Assembly: GCA_937625935.1 (NCBI GenBank)
Contig: OW569362.1
Coordinates: forward strand, 124,001 to 188,000
Direction: 5' to 3'
Source: Tetramitus jugosus
Lineage: Eukaryota; Protista; Heterolobosea
Length of the DNA: 64,000 nucleotides
Below are positions 43,371 to 54,508 of the stretch, piece by piece (within the stretch, counting starts at the first letter, position 1; the number at the start of each line of letters is the position of its first letter). The position numbers were made by a program, and so were the translations under genes. The notes beneath the pieces are model-generated. The model was given only the letters and a program-made list of their open reading frames with translations. It had not been told where the DNA came from and did no database searches.

Positions 43371-45569
43371 ATGTTCTCTCAATGGGTCAGTTCCATTGTT
43401 TCCTATAGCTCAGAGTCCCACTACTCTGCACCTGCATCAGGCAGTTGGCCCGCCACCAACGTCATTGGGCCATCCAACACCTATCCCAACTATGGAGATT
43501 TGTATACTGCATGGGCACCATCCAAATCCTCTGGTTGTGACGAGTATTTGGAACTGGAGTTTGAGAAGCCTGTTTTTGTGAGAGCAGTGTCCATTTATGA
43601 GACATTTCATCCAGGTTCCATTGTACGCATCACTTGTCGCAGTCCGAGTCACGAATACAATGTGCTGTACGAGGGTGAGTCACATCAGAGAACACTGCCA
43701 CCACAAGCCAGAATATTCAGTCCACAATTGTCCTATGATGCCACTCATTTCAGTGGCAGTGGCAATGCGATACATCAGACCACGGGTTACGTGACACGGC
43801 ACATCATGATTCATTTAGACACCAGATTGAACAAGGGTTGGTCAGAGATTGATGCCATTCTATTGCAAGGTACTCTACCCCATACCATATCACAGACAAT
43901 GAAGCGTCATTATGCATCCTTGTTCTTGAACAGTCATCGTGGTTATGGTGAACAACGACAGGGAGAACGAGACACCAGTGTGCCCTTCTCTGACTTTTCA
44001 TTCACACATTACTATGGTGGTAGTCAGATCAGTGAACCTTGCAAAGATAAAAGCGATCGTTACTTGAAACAGATGAGAGGTGAACTGTACACAGAGTCCT
44101 GCATCACCACATATCACTTGCACTCTGTCATTCTACAGTATAGATGCCCAGATTTGTACCGAGACATGAAGAGGCAACAACAGCAGCAGAAGAGTCATGA
44201 CACAAGAGGATTTCTCAGTCATGTTCATCCATCTGCTCTATACACTCTCTTGTACTTTATCTATTGTGATGAAATAGAAATCTTGAATGAAAAGAGTGTC
44301 ACTCAAGTGTGTTCCGTGTTTGACCAATTGTATCCAGTAGCTGTTCAATATCGGATGGATCGATTGATTCAAATATGTCGAATGTTCCACCACTACAATA
44401 ACAAGATCCATTTGACACAATCGGAACATTATGCCAACTATTCTCAAATTGATATGTCTATTCCCGTGACTTTACCAGGTGATATGACCAAGGCTCTAGC
44501 AGACGCCAACAGTGGAAATGACAGTGAGAACTACAGTCGACCCGATATTTGCTTCATTGTTCGCAAAGCAAGGAAACAAGAACAATGGGAATCAACTGAT
44601 AACAGTCATTTATACACCAAGGTTTTTGCTCATGGAGCAATTGTGTGTGCCAGGAGTGCTTACTTTCATGCGTTGCTCACAAGGTGGAGCAAAGAATTCA
44701 TCAATGAAGAGAGGGATACAATGACTGACGATAGTATCAAGGAAGATGGACAACATGTAGTACAACTGGATGACATTGACGAAGAAATGCTTCGATTGCT
44801 ACTGCATTTCATGTATAGTGGTGAGTTGATGGTATCAATGGAGAATGCAATTCATTTGCTGATGAGTGGCAGGTTGTTGTTGCTCGAGGATTTCGAGGTT
44901 CCTGTCTTGTCTGTGATCAAGGAGGGTATTGATGAGCACAATGTTGTCGATTTATTGAATATGACTCATGGTGATGCATCACTGGCTGACATCATGTCCA
45001 TGTGTTGTGAATTTCTGCTTCACATGCCCAATGAAGACATGGCACATGTGCTTGGAAATCAATTGAGTCAAGAGTTGAAACACACTATGATCCAGTTAGT
45101 ACCAGAGCTACACTACATACTATCCTATGGAGCAAAGAGCGCTCAACAGTACGTACTCTCTGTTACCAATGCCAGTAACAATGAGAAGACGGAGAGTATC
45201 ATTGGGGCTATGAGAAGCTATCCTCCCAGTTTGGGCGAAAGGAGCAAGTATTGGTCAACAGAGAAGGACAGAGGTTCATTTGTTGAACTGGAGTATGCCT
45301 TTCCCATGTTTATCACTGGTGTAGAAGTGTGTGAGATGGGTGATCCAGATACCATTGACCGAATTGCTGTTCTCAATCCATGTACAGGCACATGGGATGA
45401 CATCTATGAGCGAGGAGAAACATTGACCATGACTCCAAAGAACCACATGTGTCGAATGTTTCAAGTACCCAACATCAAGCTCCTAAACTATTCATCAAAC
45501 AGTATCAGAATAATATTTGACGGAATAGCGATCATTGGATCCGTTCAGATCCTAGGGTACCGAATTTAA
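43371..45569 (+). CDS. Double BTB/POZ protein flanked by two FBXL4-N-like (discoidin-like) domains
   Basis: N-domain GPSNTYPNYGD..AWAP..EYLELEFEKPV...IYETFHPGSIVRI...EIDAILLQG, repeated at the C-terminus (FVELEY...VCEMGDP). BTB motifs: HLHSVILQYRC..LLYFIYCD and AHGAIVCARSAYF..LLHFMYSG. Confidence 0.8.
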   Translation: MFSQWVSSIVSYSSESHYSAPASGSWPATNVIGPSNTYPNYGDLYTAWAPSKSSGCDEYLELEFEKPVFVRAVSIYETFHPGSIVRITCRSPSHEYNVLYEGESHQRTLPPQARIFSPQLSYDATHFSGSGNAIHQTTGYVTRHIMIHLDTRLNKGWSEIDAILLQGTLPHTISQTMKRHYASLFLNSHRGYGEQRQGERDTSVPFSDFSFTHYYGGSQISEPCKDKSDRYLKQMRGELYTESCITTYHLHSVILQYRCPDLYRDMKRQQQQQKSHDTRGFLSHVHPSALYTLLYFIYCDEIEILNEKSVTQVCSVFDQLYPVAVQYRMDRLIQICRMFHHYNNKIHLTQSEHYANYSQIDMSIPVTLPGDMTKALADANSGNDSENYSRPDICFIVRKARKQEQWESTDNSHLYTKVFAHGAIVCARSAYFHALLTRWSKEFINEERDTMTDDSIKEDGQHVVQLDDIDEEMLRLLLHFMYSGELMVSMENAIHLLMSGRLLLLEDFEVPVLSVIKEGIDEHNVVDLLNMTHGDASLADIMSMCCEFLLHMPNEDMAHVLGNQLSQELKHTMIQLVPELHYILSYGAKSAQQYVLSVTNASNNEKTESIIGAMRSYPPSLGERSKYWSTEKDRGSFVELEYAFPMFITGVEVCEMGDPDTIDRIAVLNPCTGTWDDIYERGETLTMTPKNHMCRMFQVPNIKLLNYSSNSIRIIFDGIAIIGSVQILGYRI

Positions 45570-45654
45570 GGTGGCGGTCCACTGTCGATCAAACCATAAT
45601 AAAAAAATTATGATTTCCCGAGAAGACACCTTAACGCTCCTACATAATCGGGAC
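45566..45654 (-). ncRNA. Candidate Fanzor omegaRNA scaffold / element right end
   Basis: Lies directly 3' of the Fanzor stop. TCCCGA/TCGGGA stem (45616-21 with 45648-53); 10-bp hairpin (45591-45616); GTGG/CCAC hairpin (45571-82); 8-nt complementarity TTAAGGTG/CACCTTAA (45627-34 with 45566-73). Confidence 0.6.
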
Positions 45655-47541
45655 TTACATAGCAGCTTGATGGAGTGAGCCTTGGAGGTGTTCCACCATT
45701 TTGATTAATTCTTTTGCGACCTTTTTCTTCCTCTTGAAAGCATCGGGACGTGACTGTCCATCCATTTCTGTTCTCAGTAGATGGAGCATGTTCTTGGCCG
45801 CATTGATGTCTCTGTTGTGAGTCACTAAACATTTAGTGGTTGCACACTGTTTAACTCCTCGGACGACAGAGACATTCAACGTTCCATTCTTGTCTATTCT
45901 CTTATGCTTGACTGGCTTGAGTTGACAATGACAGCCATTGCAAATCTGAGAAGTCTTATACTCATCCACCATATGGACTTGGAAATGCTCAGTCATTCTC
46001 TTCAACAATTTGACTTTAGGACTAACCATGTTACCCTTATAACTATTCTTGAATCCACCATTGCCCATCCCAATCAACATACTTCTTCCTTTCGACTTCT
46101 TTTTCAAATCATTCATCACACCAGAAAGAGTCTTGTCTCTCATCATGTAACTGTCCCAATTCAGTTTCTTCACCTTTGAAGAACAATAAAAGTCCAACAA
46201 ATCTTCCTCGACTTCCAAAACCGAATCAATATGTTCTAGGTACAAGTCATTAGACGAGACATTAGAAGTCTTGATCGAGTTGTGGAGTTGATCAACATTC
46301 TTCCCACTCTTCTCATTCCACTGCTTTTGGAATTTCAATAATCGTTTCTTGTTCTTGGAATGGTGAGAGAGGTGATGGTAGGTCTTGTTACTCAACTCCC
46401 ATTTGTTACCGTCATTATCAACACAAGACAATAAGGTAACAATACCGGGATCAATGCCCACCAAGTATTCGAATTGAGGGATTGGAGGTTTTGGATCAAC
46501 CTTTTTCTTCTTGGGTGCCTTTTCCTCTGACTTCTTCTTTTTCACCTTGTGGTTCACATGGTTATCAATCAATTGATGTCTAACAACCACAGAGGCCTGT
46601 ATACCATCTGTTCTCACAGAGTCAATCTGCAACTTCCTTGAACCGACATTCAAACAATCAAGGTTGTATGAAAACACTGGGCCTTTTTGGATCTTGTCTA
46701 ACAATTTTTGAAATTCTTTGGTTCCAATTTCGATACATCTACACCTAAAATGACACTGTGGCAACAAAGTAAATGATTTCCTGTCTTTAGAGATCAAATA
46801 TTTTTGAATGTGCCAGTAAAGTTTGAGAATTTGATTAGGATTCTTTTCGATGTAATCTTCACTCATTGGTTCTTTTGTGCCAACAACGTCATTCACTTCT
46901 TTGATCAATTGAGGGATTAAATAAATCAATTCTTGAGGAGGCAGTTTTTGAAAGTCATACACCTCAGCCGTAAAGATTAATTTTCTAATGATGTAATCAA
47001 TCACTCTTCTTTGTTCACTTTTTGGAATCTTTAAAGATGGATCAATCAATTCTTCCATTCTCAGTCTCAAATAGCGCTTCAATCTTTGCTCCAAAGTGAA
47101 TTGAAACATATTAGAGATATTAGTGGCCAATGATTTGGCAACATAATTGAATGAATCTGAATAGCCATTGTATATTTTTCGCAACTTTTCGATTTCATCA
47201 TTCATGTTGATGGTGGCATTGATTCTTTCAACATTCTTGGTTCTATCAACAGAGTTTCTTCCAAAAAGGACAGAACAAATTCTTTGAATGAAGCCTTGAT
47301 TCACCTCAGGAATATTCACTCGTGATTTCAAGCACTTCAAAACAAAGGAATTGAGGAGCCTAGAGATTCTAATAGCTGCTCTAGTAATTCCTTTTGCTCT
47401 ATCTTCAATCACTGGAACTAAAGAAGGATGATTCTTCAATAGAGATTTCAAACCAACCTTGATGACATAATGAGAAGAATAGTTTTCCTTATTGACTCTT
47501 GTTCTCTTCCTCTTCCCACTCTTGGGTACTCCTCGAGGCAT
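45655..47541 (-). CDS. Fanzor1: Fanzor (eukaryotic TnpB-family RNA-guided RuvC endonuclease), Fanzor1-like, 628 aa
   Basis: RuvC-I VGIDPG (D364), relocated RuvC-II VDEYKTSQ (E527), zinc finger CNGC...CATTKC, RuvC-III HNRDINAAKNM (D578). Fanzor1-type motifs VIKVGL, FTLLP, RTDGIQASV, IGMGNGGF and terminal RPDAF. NLS-like KRKRTR and KRKKK. Intronless. Confidence 0.9.
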   Translation of the reverse strand: MPRGVPKSGKRKRTRVNKENYSSHYVIKVGLKSLLKNHPSLVPVIEDRAKGITRAAIRISRLLNSFVLKCLKSRVNIPEVNQGFIQRICSVLFGRNSVDRTKNVERINATINMNDEIEKLRKIYNGYSDSFNYVAKSLATNISNMFQFTLEQRLKRYLRLRMEELIDPSLKIPKSEQRRVIDYIIRKLIFTAEVYDFQKLPPQELIYLIPQLIKEVNDVVGTKEPMSEDYIEKNPNQILKLYWHIQKYLISKDRKSFTLLPQCHFRCRCIEIGTKEFQKLLDKIQKGPVFSYNLDCLNVGSRKLQIDSVRTDGIQASVVVRHQLIDNHVNHKVKKKKSEEKAPKKKKVDPKPPIPQFEYLVGIDPGIVTLLSCVDNDGNKWELSNKTYHHLSHHSKNKKRLLKFQKQWNEKSGKNVDQLHNSIKTSNVSSNDLYLEHIDSVLEVEEDLLDFYCSSKVKKLNWDSYMMRDKTLSGVMNDLKKKSKGRSMLIGMGNGGFKNSYKGNMVSPKVKLLKRMTEHFQVHMVDEYKTSQICNGCHCQLKPVKHKRIDKNGTLNVSVVRGVKQCATTKCLVTHNRDINAAKNMLHLLRTEMDGQSRPDAFKRKKKVAKELIKMVEHLQGSLHQAAM

Positions 47542-47942
47542 ACTAATGGTTGTTTGGTTTGATAAAAATGAGATATGATTGTTATTGTATTTGTTGTATG
47601 GTGTATTTGTTGTGTGTTGTATTTGTTGTGTGAGTTGAATCAAACAGCGAAAAGACAGCGCTTTTTAAACCGAGGTAGATGGCCGTTGTCGTTGTAAGGA
47701 CAGTCTCAACGGAAATTTTTACAACTGCACCAATTCCGCAGCTTAGAGGAAACTGATACAACATTTATTGTATTTTTTTATAATATATCCACCTATCTAT
47801 CCAATCTTGAACCAAACGAAAGACAACGAAAAACTTTCTCTCTGACACGACAACAACAACAACGAAAAACACAAGTCGCACAACGAACATCAACAACAAC
47901 AACCAAATCAATCAAAAAAGATGGAGAGTCGACAAGAGGTGT

Positions 47943-48596
47943 CTATTTGCAGTGTGCATTGTAGATTCTCTGAGCAAGTTTCAAGTAGGAGAATACAAGC
48001 GGTACCAATGTGTATTGAATTCTCTTGACACCACCCTGACCAAAGTGCTTTCTGGCTGCGGCCAAAACTTTAAACAATTGATCAGTATCGCTATTATCAA
48101 ACAAATGAACCAATCTGGCAATCAAGTTCTGTTCTTCTTCGAAATCTTCGAGCAATGTTGCAGCTATTGGTGAGTCGTCAGAAGGTGAGAATGTTGTTTG
48201 GTCTTCATCCTTCAACAGTGGACGAATCAAATCAAACAGTTTGTTCACTTGTTCAAATGTTGAAATCTTGTGTCCATTGTCAAGTGCGCATCTCACAATG
48301 CTCAGTGCAATAAACTTTCTCTGTTCATATCCAAGAGAATGAATAATATCACCATACTTCTCCAACTTCAAAACTGTTAGCACATTGTTGTATGACTCGA
48401 GTGGCACCAACAACAATCGCTTCAACATGTCTACAATTTCATCTGAAGCTAGTGCAGTGCTATTCAATTGACTAGCAATGTTATTAATAATCTTGTTGAC
48501 ATAGTCAGTGTTATCAGGATATGTTTGAAGAGCAAGTGTCATCAATAAGATCTGAATACTCAAGTTATCGGACAATTCGGACAATTCAACATCTCT
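47943..48596 (-). pseudogene. VPS35: Internal fragment of retromer VPS35, truncated at both ends
   Basis: ALQTYPDNTDYVNKI, LLLVPLESYNNVLTVLKL, FEEEQNLIARLVHL and ARKHFGQGGVKRIQYTLVPLVF match mid-VPS35. Only ~215 aa of a ~800-aa protein, with no other VPS35 exons nearby; preceded by an acceptor-like CATTAG. Confidence 0.75.
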
Positions 48597-48869
48597 CTAA
48601 TGGTATCAATAGGACAGAATTTGACAAACTTCAGAAAACTCACACTCATCATCAGGTCACTCGCATTCACGATGTCCTTCAGAGTGTTTGTTTTCTGTTT
48701 TTTGCAAGTTTTTTTTGATGAAAAAAATTCGTGAACAAATGGGAAAACAAGGAAAAGGCGCCAAAAGAAGACTTAACCAACAATTGGTAAAGTTGCACCA
48801 TTGGTGCAAGTTTGGAGTCAAAAGAAAAGTAAGAATAACCGATATCCATATTGATTTATTTGTGTATCT

Positions 48870-49697
48870 AGTTGGTTCGTTCCTTGGTGTAGAAGATGTG
48901 TTGAATTTGGTAAGGATCTGAGGAGAATCGTATTCCCAATCATATTCAGGCTCAATCGATGTGGATCTCAAGATCAACAATGGTTGACCAATGTGGGAAG
49001 AGTATTTACTCAACTCCAGAGTTCATCAACTCAAAGATTTGATGGTCCTGCCTCAGATAGTGGTGATATTTTTATTAATGTTGTCTCTGGAGAGTTAACC
49101 ACGTACCCTATAACAACAACAGCACAAGAGTGGATTAACAAGTACAGCATACAACCACCATACTTTTGGGCAAACTTCAGTCCATCATTCACCCAGACAG
49201 CTCTGGCAATGGAGAGCGTTCGATACACGGATCCTCTGTCACACACTTATGCAGATCAACATACAAAGCCGGTGCTAACAATGCAAGGCACATTGGATCC
49301 TCAAACTCCGTACTCCTTTGTCGAAGCTTGGAATCAGCACTACAACCGAAATAACAACTATTTTGTTAGTTTCCCGAATGCAGTTCATGCAACAGCATTC
49401 AGTACTCCAACTTCCTCTCAGACTCAATATATTAACAATTATTGTGGAAGTGTGGTAATGCTAGAATTTATCAAGAATAACAATGGAGTTACCACCAGTT
49501 GTGTATCACAAACTGAGGATGCTACTTTTAACTTTAACGTCCTTCCACAATCTGTAGCTGCTATGACGGGAGGTTTGCCGCTGTGGGATGATAGTGGAAC
49601 AAGCCCAACAGTATCACCCAGCGGTAGTAGCAATGCGGTTCGAGCTTCCATGCCTTTGGTCGCAGTGTTGATGTCTGTTATTCTCCTTTTATTGTAA
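48870..49697 (+). pseudogene. C-terminal part of a GPI-type alpha/beta hydrolase (TAP-like/S33 peptidase), apparently 5'-truncated
   Basis: IIFRLNRC, PVLTMQGTLDPQTP (Asp), FPNAVHAT (His), CG..VMLEFI and a hydrophobic tail. No nucleophile GxSxG exon, signal peptide or ATG-initiated N-terminus seen upstream. Confidence 0.6.
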
Positions 49698-50095
49698 ATA
49701 CAAACAATCAGATTTGCTCTTCCCTTGCATTTAATTGTTCGCGCCATTTTCCCCAAAATCAAAAAAATGATAAGGAACAAGAACAACAACTTGGTGGCGT
49801 CACTGTTGCACAGGAAATCACTACGACGTAGGTGGTGCTCCCTCACAACAATTGTTCAGATCGGTACCTTTTGTGAAGTTCATCTATTTTCGATCGTTGA
49901 ACTTTATTTTGACATCGATCTCCTATAAAAAATTCCGAGTGAACCAGAGATCTACCAAAGATCCATGAAGTCCAGTCAACCCGCAGCTCTCTGCACAACC
50001 TTCAAGTAGTTCTGATCTCACAATATTACCGTTAGTAAAACAAAGTCACACAAAACCTTTTCAACAACACGTTTAGACATACTCATACAGATACA

Positions 50096-51466
50096 ATGGT
50101 TGAATCAGGAATTCTACAACAAGGTGCTCAACAATTCATGGGAGATAGAGTACTAGGCAGTACTACGGCATCCACTTTGGGAACAACAGGCTCTTTCCAG
50201 CAAGTTCCACAACAACAGACATCAGGATTGATGTCGTCTGGTGTTCAACAACCCCCTGGTGGTAGCAGTGGAATCATGGGGTCTCTCTCCTCGTTGGGAC
50301 AACAACAAAGTGGACTGCAACAGCAGGGTGGACTACAACAGCAGGGAGGACTACAACAGCAACCAATGCAGCAACAATCCTCACTTGTTGGACAACAACA
50401 GTACCCAACTTCCTCTGGATTGACAAGCGGAACAACTGGTCAAACCTCTGGCTACTACTCCACTCCATCTCAACAGCAGTTCCAACAACAGCAACCTTTG
50501 GGCAGTGAACGTTTCTACACTTCTCAACCACAACAAATCTCCTCCTCAAGTGGCATCGGTGGAACATCAACCTTCCAACAACCACAGCAACAGCAACAGC
50601 AGTTCCAGCCACAACAACAACTCCAACAACAGCAGTTCCAACCACAACAGCAGTATCAACAACCTATCCAGCAGCAGCAGTTTGTGACTCCATTGACCTC
50701 CTCCACTACTTCTACATTCAGGCAACCCATCACTTCTTCAACTAGTGGTGGCATCTTGTCAAGCAGTGGTATTGGTCGTACTACTACTGGTGGTGGAGTG
50801 CAACGCACTGGTGAAAAGTTGGATGGATTTGACATGTTGTTACAAGATCAAAAGGACATTTTAGAGCTCTATGAGAATCATTACTTGCTCGAGAGAGACA
50901 TGAGTCACAAGAAACAAATTTTGAACTTGTTGATTGAAGAATTGTGTATTCACTCCAGTGTGGATGAAGTCATTGTGTTCCCCTTGTTGGAATTCGTTCT
51001 ACCAGATGGCAAGAGATTGGCCGAGAGAAACTATTGGCAACACTTGCTCAATCGTATCCACTTCCAGAAGATTCTCGAGATGGACACCAATGACAAACTG
51101 TTTGAATCCAGTGTGGAGCACATGATGATCTACATGAAGGACCAATTGAAGATGAACGAGTTTGACATTTATGCCAGAGCAAGACAACGAATGTCCTCGG
51201 ATCAGTTGGCTGTGTTGTACAGATTGGTTGAAGCAGCACGTCAATTGGCACCTACTACTCCCAGAGATAACCACTCATGGTTCAAGGGCAGAATTGTGGA
51301 AGTGTTTGACGATTTGAAGTGTCAGTTGAAACAAAGCTGTGGTAGTAGTGTCGGTGGTAGTGATTGGAAGCAGCAACAGCAACAACAGCAAGGATACTCT
51401 TCATCATCATCTTCCTCCTTCGCATCCTCCTCTGGTGTGGGTGGCAGCAGTCTCAGAAGAATTTAA
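50096..51466 (+). CDS. Q/G/S-rich protein with a degenerate hemerythrin (HHE)-like domain
   Basis: DGFDMLLQDQKDI...LIEELCIHSSVDEVIVFPLL...QH...NEFDIY...APTTPR; N-terminal GGLQQQ and QQQFQPQQ repeats. Confidence 0.7.
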   Translation: MVESGILQQGAQQFMGDRVLGSTTASTLGTTGSFQQVPQQQTSGLMSSGVQQPPGGSSGIMGSLSSLGQQQSGLQQQGGLQQQGGLQQQPMQQQSSLVGQQQYPTSSGLTSGTTGQTSGYYSTPSQQQFQQQQPLGSERFYTSQPQQISSSSGIGGTSTFQQPQQQQQQFQPQQQLQQQQFQPQQQYQQPIQQQQFVTPLTSSTTSTFRQPITSSTSGGILSSSGIGRTTTGGGVQRTGEKLDGFDMLLQDQKDILELYENHYLLERDMSHKKQILNLLIEELCIHSSVDEVIVFPLLEFVLPDGKRLAERNYWQHLLNRIHFQKILEMDTNDKLFESSVEHMMIYMKDQLKMNEFDIYARARQRMSSDQLAVLYRLVEAARQLAPTTPRDNHSWFKGRIVEVFDDLKCQLKQSCGSSVGGSDWKQQQQQQQGYSSSSSSSFASSSGVGGSSLRRI

Positions 51467-53188: not shown

Positions 53189-54508
53189 ATGAAATTACAA
53201 TCTATCATAAGAAAACTCAATCCGCGAGTGAGAGCTCACACAACTATAAGCCAATTCCATACGCCAGACCTCAAAGTTGTGAGCTACGATGAATCCAATG
53301 ATGAACCTTACTTCTTTACTAATGATGAAGATGAAATTCCACCCAGGTTGCACGGTGTGGTAAATACTCACGACAAGATTCCGAAGTATCCTCCAAAGAT
53401 TTCCTCACTCTCCAATTCAAAGGTTCCCAAGGTCTACGCTGGAAACAAACAGAGATTCACTTCAGGTAAGAGGGTACCTAGCAACTGGTTGGAGAAAATG
53501 GAGAAGGGTATGGAGGCATCATGGATAGTGTACGTGATATACAAGTTTGCTGGTGAATGTAATGATTTGGTTCTTGACACAGAGTCCTATTGTCTTGTGC
53601 CTCCTTTTGAGTATGAGGGGGCATTAAATAAGTCTGGTAAACAAATTAGTTTTACTGCAAGTGCTTTTCAAGTCACCCCGTACTATGACAAAGATGATAA
53701 GTTGATACTGGCTACTTGTTCTCATAGTATTGTACCTCTCATCAAGAACAACAACAAAATCTACACATTATCAGAAATTATAGCATGTAATGTTGATAGC
53801 CGAGAACTTGATTATCCAAGTGTGATCTGTGAAGTGTTGAAAGATGGAAACGTTGATCAAAAAGCTCATGTGGCTAGTTCTCACGACTATGCTTTCCTAA
53901 TTGCAAAGGAAGTCCCATCAGACCATCCTGACGAAAATGTTGACCACAACAATACCTTTCCCAACTTTCTCATCCCCAGACCAATATCAGCTGTGATAAA
54001 CAGTGAAGAGAAGAAATCGATTGCAGATAATCCTACCGATGGCTATGACCATGTTGTTATAGGTTCTCCAGCACCGGTTAACAAGACTTTCGTTTCCGAA
54101 TTGAACAAACAATTTAAGTCCAAGTACTCCGCCAAACGAATCAATTATCTCCTAGGAACAGATTATCGATCAGTATCCTTGGGACAAGTAGTAGATCATC
54201 ATGGTGAAACATACAATCACACCTCAGGTACTAGTCCAGGCAGTTCAGGTTCGGCCACGATTGTCCTTGAAAGCCCGATTTTCGAGAAATCTAAGTCACC
54301 CTTTCCCGAAATCCTTACCTTCCAAGGAATTCACATTGGGGGAGGGACGTTGAACTATGCCTTCTCTGTTTGCAACAACAATTTTCACAGCGATTACTTA
54401 GAGTATGTGGTTAACAATCTCACAGAACGACAACTTGGGAAATTCAGCACAGATCAGCTCCAGCTGCTGAAGGAGTATATTCAACTCCACTCAGAGAACA
54501 GAGAGTAG
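53189..54508 (+). CDS. Trypsin-like serine protease (divergent)
   Basis: Triad motifs ATCSH, HDYAFL and TSPGSSGSA, followed by QGIHIGG; intronless. Confidence 0.7.
   Translation: MKLQSIIRKLNPRVRAHTTISQFHTPDLKVVSYDESNDEPYFFTNDEDEIPPRLHGVVNTHDKIPKYPPKISSLSNSKVPKVYAGNKQRFTSGKRVPSNWLEKMEKGMEASWIVYVIYKFAGECNDLVLDTESYCLVPPFEYEGALNKSGKQISFTASAFQVTPYYDKDDKLILATCSHSIVPLIKNNNKIYTLSEIIACNVDSRELDYPSVICEVLKDGNVDQKAHVASSHDYAFLIAKEVPSDHPDENVDHNNTFPNFLIPRPISAVINSEEKKSIADNPTDGYDHVVIGSPAPVNKTFVSELNKQFKSKYSAKRINYLLGTDYRSVSLGQVVDHHGETYNHTSGTSPGSSGSATIVLESPIFEKSKSPFPEILTFQGIHIGGGTLNYAFSVCNNNFHSDYLEYVVNNLTERQLGKFSTDQLQLLKEYIQLHSENRE

Follow-up and report, generated by a model that had tools for sequence, protein, structure and literature searches.

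The 64,000-nucleotide stretch analysed here (the window) comes from the heterolobosean Tetramitus jugosus, a free-living amoeba (assembly GCA_937625935.1, contig OW569362.1, positions 124,001 to 188,000) and contains a Fanzor1 gene, encoding a predicted RNA-guided endonuclease, on a non-autonomous transposable element that has lost its left end. On balance we think it probable that this copy is the product of aborted Fanzor-driven homing on a cut-and-paste element of apparent Kolobok type, a reading based on the scars left at its left junction and at those of its relatives. The T. jugosus CCAP 1588/3C assembly comprises 26.3 Mb in 55 scaffolds plus the mitochondrion and represents one of two haplotypes (PMC11106597); the genome as searched (G000, with pieces designated C1, C16 and so on) amounts to 26.35 Mb in 56 pieces, the longest being 0.70 Mb. 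Positions given without prefix are those of the window.

The element lies antisense to a host BTB/POZ gene (43371-45569, plus strand), whose stop codon is the insertion site, and parts that gene from its original 3′ flank. The TTAA target site at 45566-45569 contains the gene's TAA stop and adjoins the right terminal inverted repeat (45570-45582), which is of the first of two types, A and B, found in the family and ends in CC on the element strand. Inward from it lie the Fanzor1 open reading frame (ORF; 45655-47541, minus strand), an element-borne leader and upstream region (47542-47945, minus strand), a captured fragment of a Vps35 gene with a 213-codon frame (47946-48584, minus strand) and the surviving remainder of a long left arm (48585-48912, minus strand), at the end of which the element is cut off; no left inverted repeat is present in the window. 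Position 47756, within the upstream region, is the point where a short subfamily changes to another left arm. The Vps35 fragment is found in about 20 copies and is 99% identical to its likely host source (G000:C22:83281-83910). Beyond 48912 stands a 948-bp piece (48911-49858, plus strand), joined by 2-nt and 5-nt microhomologies and matching the 3′ portion of an alpha/beta hydrolase gene (G000:C16:300340-301289) at 95% identity, followed by a scar made of a remnant of the element's own right flank (49854-49868, minus strand) and by the original left flank (49866-49900). The span first proposed for this locus, 45566-47541, begins exactly at the TTAA of the right end, a boundary that stands; its other boundary is too short, since element-derived DNA reaches 48912 and inserted DNA 49865. 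The CAA-rich leader, described at that stage as host-style, belongs to the element; it and the upstream region are 95-100% identical in other copies.

Contigs from groundwater, soil and culture runs join 45569 directly to 49866, with 1-2 A between and a single TTAA, revealing an empty allele, and contigs from the same three runs bridge the 49858-49866 junction of the filled site; both alleles are thus present in each of the three samples. Heterozygosity is the simplest reading of this, and the culture run may be that of the source study. These contigs also bear on whether the left junction and the C16-derived piece might be an assembly artefact. A mis-join would indeed look like this, with a repeat running into a copy of another chromosome, and among the matches listed no contig bridges 48911/48912, but the bridging of 49858-49866 in three runs, the 5% difference between the copied piece and its source and the use of long reads for the assembly make an artefact very improbable.

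When compared with the empty allele, the left junction of the window copy retains the left flank but has lost the TTAA and positions +1 to +4 of the right flank between two GGT microhomologies. It also lacks +11 to +14, so that +5 to +10 and +15 to +23 are what remains, the latter leading through the 5-nt microhomology into the C16 copy. The flank that recurs here in damaged form (+1 to +23) is that at 45543-45565 (minus strand). Such scars were scored as a junction-centred match of a left junction to its own right flank, against random pieces, in the seven truncated and ten complete copies whose junctions were read. The left junction resembles the right flank in the window copy (p 0.002), in L068 and L069 (p 0.0005 for each) and in L050 (p 0.005): in L068 the TTAA and 18-20 nt are duplicated with two mismatches, in L069 the TTAA and 21-22 nt with a 1-nt deletion and in L050 the TTAA and 6-9 nt. 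Flank duplication is accordingly seen in four of the seven truncated copies and in none of the ten complete ones, which carry the 4-bp duplication alone (Fisher p 0.015). Three of the four scars end at +18 to +23; in SpuFz1, the Fanzor1 of Spizellomyces punctatus, the cuts fall behind bases 16-17 and 20-21. None of the four left junctions preserves an intact target-adjacent motif (TAM) plus target. The family's remnants are also polarised: at least 11 solo right ends stand against 2 solo left ends (p 0.02), and neither of the latter has a mirror scar. The L068 and L069 pieces, like the window copy, sit at host stop codons.

In the series of events that we envisage, a DDE transposase acting in trans would insert the element at a TTAA, and the right end would be transcribed into an omegaRNA, with the TTAA folded into its scaffold and the next 15-20 nt of flank serving as guide. 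The TAM would consist of the left TTAA and the A or T preceding it, so that an element end, with CC before its TTAA, would be spared. The Fanzor would cut some 18-23 nt past the TAM, either after excision or on the empty homologue, and the distal end of the break would copy the element back, starting from the right end. In the window copy, synthesis would have run for 3.3 kb and then switched to the C16 gene for 948 bp, after which the aborted product would have been joined to the TAM-side end of the break, still holding the target up to +23. The TAM and seed would have been lost through two later small deletions. We observe the scars, with their length and polarity, and infer from them the cut, the donor and the sequence of events.

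Target-primed reverse transcription typically gives 5′ truncation accompanied by duplications of such length, and the truncated copies could on that ground be regarded as retro-insertions, in which Fanzor transcripts or omegaRNA were reverse-transcribed at a nick by the enzyme of a long interspersed nuclear element (LINE), possibly at a Fanzor cut, leaving duplications of 13-27 bp. Both the 5′ truncation and the duplication lengths fit, and the pieces retained in L067 and L068 (107-117 nt) are about the size of one omegaRNA scaffold. We nevertheless regard retro-insertion as improbable: neither poly(A) nor foreign donor flank is seen at any right end, the window copy holds 1.3 kb upstream of the ATG as well as the switch to an unlinked gene, and no complete copy among the loci read shares a flank with L068 or L069.

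The TAM proposed above is read from the bases around the insertion sites. Of 14 copies, 13 have A or T immediately before the left TTAA, compared with 15 of 31 that have A or T immediately after the right TTAA (p 0.007), and with a genome-wide pattern count added the left-hand figure becomes 16/17 against a background of 0.67 (p 0.011). A bare TTAA would be a self-destructive TAM, because every filled site has TTAA and a perfect target at its own right end, whilst W-TTAA (W being A or T) would spare filled sites, because the element's own end places C before TTAA. These observations point to W-TTAA as the TAM.

The omegaRNA scaffold is predicted to occupy 45566-45690 (minus strand, 5′ limit approximate), overlapping the stop codon of the ORF. 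Its predicted parts are a hairpin over the stop codon (45641-45661), an inner hairpin (45594-45613) and a long stem, at the base of which an internal UUAAGGUG (5′ arm, 45627-45634) pairs with the terminal repeat and TTAA. This nested terminal stem folds in the last 125 nt with z -1.65 in the window copy and z 0.05 in one divergent copy, and in relatives at 55-57% identity z reaches -3.5 and -5.4. In Fanzor1 omegaRNAs the repeat and the duplication lie inside the scaffold and there is no pseudoknot (PMC10711439); the window scaffold is predicted to share this architecture, from which the guide would run from 45565 downward, taking in the first 15-20 nt of the right flank. Rfam returned no match. 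Contigs of a soil RNA run lie on 45623-45782 and 46107-46400, which indicates presence only, those on 45623-45782 not being assignable to the window copy; contigs of the soil RNA run also cover the captured Vps35 piece (47946-48720), without 46546-47900 of the Fanzor gene, and may stem from the cargo or from the host gene. Solo right-end pieces are found at L067:84-191 (107 nt), L068:3815-3932 (117 nt) and L069:3912-3957 (about 35-45 nt). Those of L067 and L068 are near scaffold size and, by analogy with the ghost loci of the Spu-1 transposon of S. punctatus, could make guide RNAs.

The Fanzor1 ORF itself runs from an ATG at 47541 to 45655 without introns or internal stops and encodes 628 amino acids, as the original prediction had it. 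That prediction also placed correctly the three RuvC residues, D364, E527 and D578, within the motifs IDPG (from residue 363), VDEYKTS (525) and NRD (576), and the four-cysteine zinc finger (C534, C537, C566 and C571). The D-E-D triad is complete and aligns with that of SpuFz1, and the RuvC and finger residues are invariant or almost so in 97 aligned homologues. Fanzor1 proteins have the catalytic glutamate about six residues ahead of the zinc finger (PMC13565253), and E527 lies at this spacing just before C534. FTLLP is found at residue 257 and RTDG at 310; basic runs at residues 10, 334, 344 and 603 are candidate nuclear localisation signals. A Pfam scan of the ORF gave a Cas12f1-like TNB domain above cut-off, and amongst solved structures SpuFz1 is the sole significant sequence match (E 3e-16). 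An AlphaFold model built from the 97 homologues (predicted local distance difference test, pLDDT, 91) finds its top fold matches in the three solved Fanzor1 proteins SpuFz, PpFz and GtFz, with template modelling (TM) scores of 0.60-0.68, that of SpuFz1, the comparison first proposed, being the best at 0.68; the mimivirus Fanzor2 (9b0l) scores 0.21 and TnpB 0.23-0.27. By motifs and modelled fold the product is a Fanzor1, with the enlarged REC of that group, and the earlier choice of Fanzor1 over Fanzor2 has held up. Identity as a Fanzor2 or IS607-type protein was rejected on the score against 9b0l and on the element's ends, which are inverted repeats with a TTAA duplication.

The ORF is also a chimera. 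Codons 1-541 (45919-47541, minus strand) belong to a minority Fanzor lineage of three copies (C19, C6 and C1) that is about 60% identical in amino acids to the 17-copy majority, with synonymous sites saturated, whereas codons 542-628 (45655-45918, minus strand) are nearly identical to the majority family, with one mismatch to L035 down to 45591. The recombination switch lies at 45918/45919. The right ends of the minority lineage are of type A in two copies and type B in one, and in a tree of the family copies the two right-end types are intermixed within the majority Fanzor clades. In solved Fanzor1 structures the TAM-reading parts are REC and WED, both of which fall within the divergent body of the window ORF. 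The ratio of non-synonymous to synonymous substitution (dN/dS) between the Fanzor lineages is about 0.14, and the ORF is under purifying selection. More tentatively, and with somewhat less than even confidence, we suggest that the junctions reflect Fanzor cutting in vivo, and homing from one side, within a eukaryote and on a Kolobok-type carrier, and that the same right-end-first repair shuffles the parts of the element. Through such repair two Fanzor bodies with different TAM-reading domains would have come to share one omegaRNA scaffold, this scaffold would have been joined to two end types, and pieces of host genes would have been gained by template switching.

A protein search of the genome gave 64 matches, 20 of them full length; 19 of these 20 are open and all motifs are present. 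Near-identical (99%) sisters of the window Fanzor are found on other chromosomes, within complete or mobile-type elements. Complete copies have short (13-bp) inverted repeats, start with GG, end with CC and have TTAA outside, on both sides in nine complete copies of the genome. Exact matches number 37 for repeat type A and 19 for type B, and reversed controls gave none; exact end pairs comprise 12 A-A and 6 B-B, spaced 2.5-4.6 kb apart, and no mixed pair. No transposase was seen within the element copies read. The family is a young, multi-copy, non-autonomous element that lacks a transposase and duplicates TTAA, in keeping with the original remark that no transposase lies nearby and that mobilisation might occur in trans. 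The same prediction allowed that the gene might be immobilised or domesticated. Immobilisation applies to the window copy, whose left end is lost, and not to the rest of the family. That the gene has settled down to serve the host is extremely improbable, for all that the ORF is intact and the copy lacks a left end: the genome-wide search for copies and empty sites that had been called for yielded some 20 dispersed full-length copies with their near-identical sisters, and domestication is contradicted by the allele that is empty in all three samples.

Kolobok elements are set apart from piggyBac by the combination of TTAA duplication with 5′-RR..YY-3′ termini (PMC9587614), and GG..CC termini with inverted repeats occur here in both end types; on this pattern the ends are classed as Kolobok-type. 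A piggyBac carrier was rejected on its 5′-YY..RR-3′ termini, Helitron and IS607 ends because paired inverted repeats and TTAA duplications were found, and the idea that the 25 nt differing between the end types are a fixed guide because this stretch holds the two repeat types. On C47, a broken ORF (L066) adjoins a type B right end; it is 89-93% like a frameshifted remnant on C1 (L070) that has HDQD and DPGH motifs (DxD, DxxH). Atlas look-alikes of this transposase remnant, at 0.95, carry PF20700. The remnant itself had no Pfam match and no homologue in a homologue search; a PF20700 scan was without match, its controls being equally blank. Ankyrin-like fragments precede the type B end and transposase remnant (L066:89-2600) and recur at many sites, several of them on C52, an arrangement that represents a further cargo-carrying family.

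How far this evidence carries the case for homing is best judged against the view that an active Kolobok-type element simply carries Fanzor1 along as a passenger, and that the truncations and flank duplications arose without any RNA-guided cut, through ordinary break repair or through aborted gap repair once the transposase had excised the element. Like many cut-and-paste families, this one often shows mosaic structure, deleted internal parts and pieces acquired from the host. Several observations, some of them shared with the passenger view, weigh against homing. Three of the seven truncated junctions (those other than window, L068, L069 and L050) have no clear scar, one of the four scars (L050) stops at +6 to +9, the numbers are small and the junction scoring was fixed after the first cases had been seen. 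In three samples the empty allele still accompanies the filled one, though it would be an expected target. An asymmetric transposase preference could give the same A/T bias before the left TTAA, and scaffold covariation is weak, not above shuffles (26-55/500). Protein searches of the genome found broken remnants only and no intact transposase partner, and for type A ends, the type of the window copy, no transposase of any kind was found. On the other side, breaks made by a transposase fall at TTAA rather than 18-23 nt inside one flank, and the passenger view fails to predict that solo right ends are in excess, that mirror scars are missing or that each left target copy is damaged; nor does it sit easily with purifying selection on the Fanzor ORF. 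We regard it as a real but unlikely explanation, and continue to favour aborted homing.

The family has further relatives. Two metagenomic ones at 55-57% identity end in a type A repeat and TTAA, and one at 39% in type B; a scan of viral contigs gave two weak, short matches only. A third Fanzor lineage (about 40% identity) has a type B end (G000:C32:2808-4866; L075:2025-2107). In L075 this end pairs with an internal strand of its own, which suggests that type B belongs originally to the third lineage and that the main family acquired it by a graft at the inner hairpin. Further relatives at 55% identity lie on gene-dense contigs, L062 (1-14521) and L063 (JGI 3300042923), with thioredoxin, ubiquitin-RING, PP2C, DUF4326 and BTB neighbours, which may be giant-virus DNA. 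Shared sequence there ceases about 35 nt past the stop codon, and since the right ends are without inverted repeat or TTAA these close kin are on a different carrier. Another metagenomic sample has a heavily deleted element of the short subfamily (L077:1-335), consisting of the left arm, a small piece of ORF and the right end. In T. jugosus itself, a PP2C-like host fragment splits, as judged by eye, the ORF of a copy with both ends (L054:250-1500, on C12). The genome also has a piggyBac-type element (L071:1125-3059, on C18, with a twin on C39), which has a 582-codon frame and 19-bp perfect inverted repeats starting AATT, not TTAA. Within the window, the region upstream of a gene for a Gln/Gly/Ser-rich protein with a weak hemerythrin match (50096-51466, E 0.011) is the original left flank of the insertion. 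Further on, a 439-codon ORF without Pfam match (53189-54508), to which stretches on C19 (74% DNA identity) and C47 (68%) are related, has a GSSGS motif suggestive of a trypsin-like protease.

The T. jugosus family provides, in a cultured amoeba, both the filled and the empty allele of one site, together with junction scars and with a TAM, a guide and a cut position predicted from the genome sequence, and bears on the question of what Fanzors do for transposons in eukaryotes. Two natural Fanzor1 proteins, about 60% identical and on one short scaffold, are candidates for testing as tools. Non-autonomous elements with inverted repeats are already known to carry Fanzor1; the literature searched contained no Kolobok-type carrier and no genomic footprints of Fanzor homing. 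The carriers listed in a 2026 review are Mariner, Sola2, MuDR, Harbinger, Helitron, Crypton, hAT, EnSpm and piggyBac (PMC13565253), without Kolobok, and a full-text literature search produced no other paper with both Fanzor and Kolobok; the Kolobok-type ends would add a transposon superfamily to the known carriers. Four features are particular to the window copy: its site also exists as an empty allele, its target has undergone two deletions, it includes a piece templated from C16, and its body comes from the minority lineage.

The closest known system is SpuFz1 with its transposon Spu-1 (PMC10432273; PDB 8gkh/9cey). Besides the fold and the glutamate just before the zinc finger, the two share a single ORF between inverted repeats, about 20 full-length copies and no transposase within the repeats. 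In SpuFz1, too, two conserved bases upstream of the duplication extend the TAM (CA + TA, giving CATA), much as W + TTAA is predicted to do here. The structural identity is only 18-19%, however, and the 13-bp repeats, TTAA duplication and GG..CC ends contrast with repeats of 30 nt; captured host genes and two end types distinguish the window family, and junction scars are not described for Spu-1 in the portion of PMC10432273 available. GtFz1 of Guillardia theta (PMC10432273, PMC11423790) resembles the window protein in its Fanzor1 fold (TM 0.60), and its tested TAM is TTAA, where ours is predicted only; identity is 15%, and its loci are reported to be without inverted repeats.

Amongst transposons, Kolobok shares the TTAA duplication and 5′-RR..YY-3′ termini, and is known from Naegleria, and a broken, putative DDE transposase with DxD and DxxH motifs lies beside a type B end in T. 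jugosus; its known accessories are KolX, exonucleases, RecQ and a His-Me finger nuclease, with no Fanzor (PMC9587614). piggyBac also duplicates TTAA and is a listed carrier (PMC13565253), and its transposases are present in the T. jugosus genome, but the repeats of the piggyBac element examined are unrelated and begin with C. Finally, the predicted logic of cutting the empty site and repairing it from the filled copy is that of the restorative homing by TnpB of IS605 and IS607. The homing experiments listed in one review concern bacterial TnpB and IscB only, and according to it TnpB homing has been shown experimentally in bacteria only (PMC13565253), whereas the homing proposed here is read from scars in a eukaryote and would operate on a duplication-making DDE carrier.

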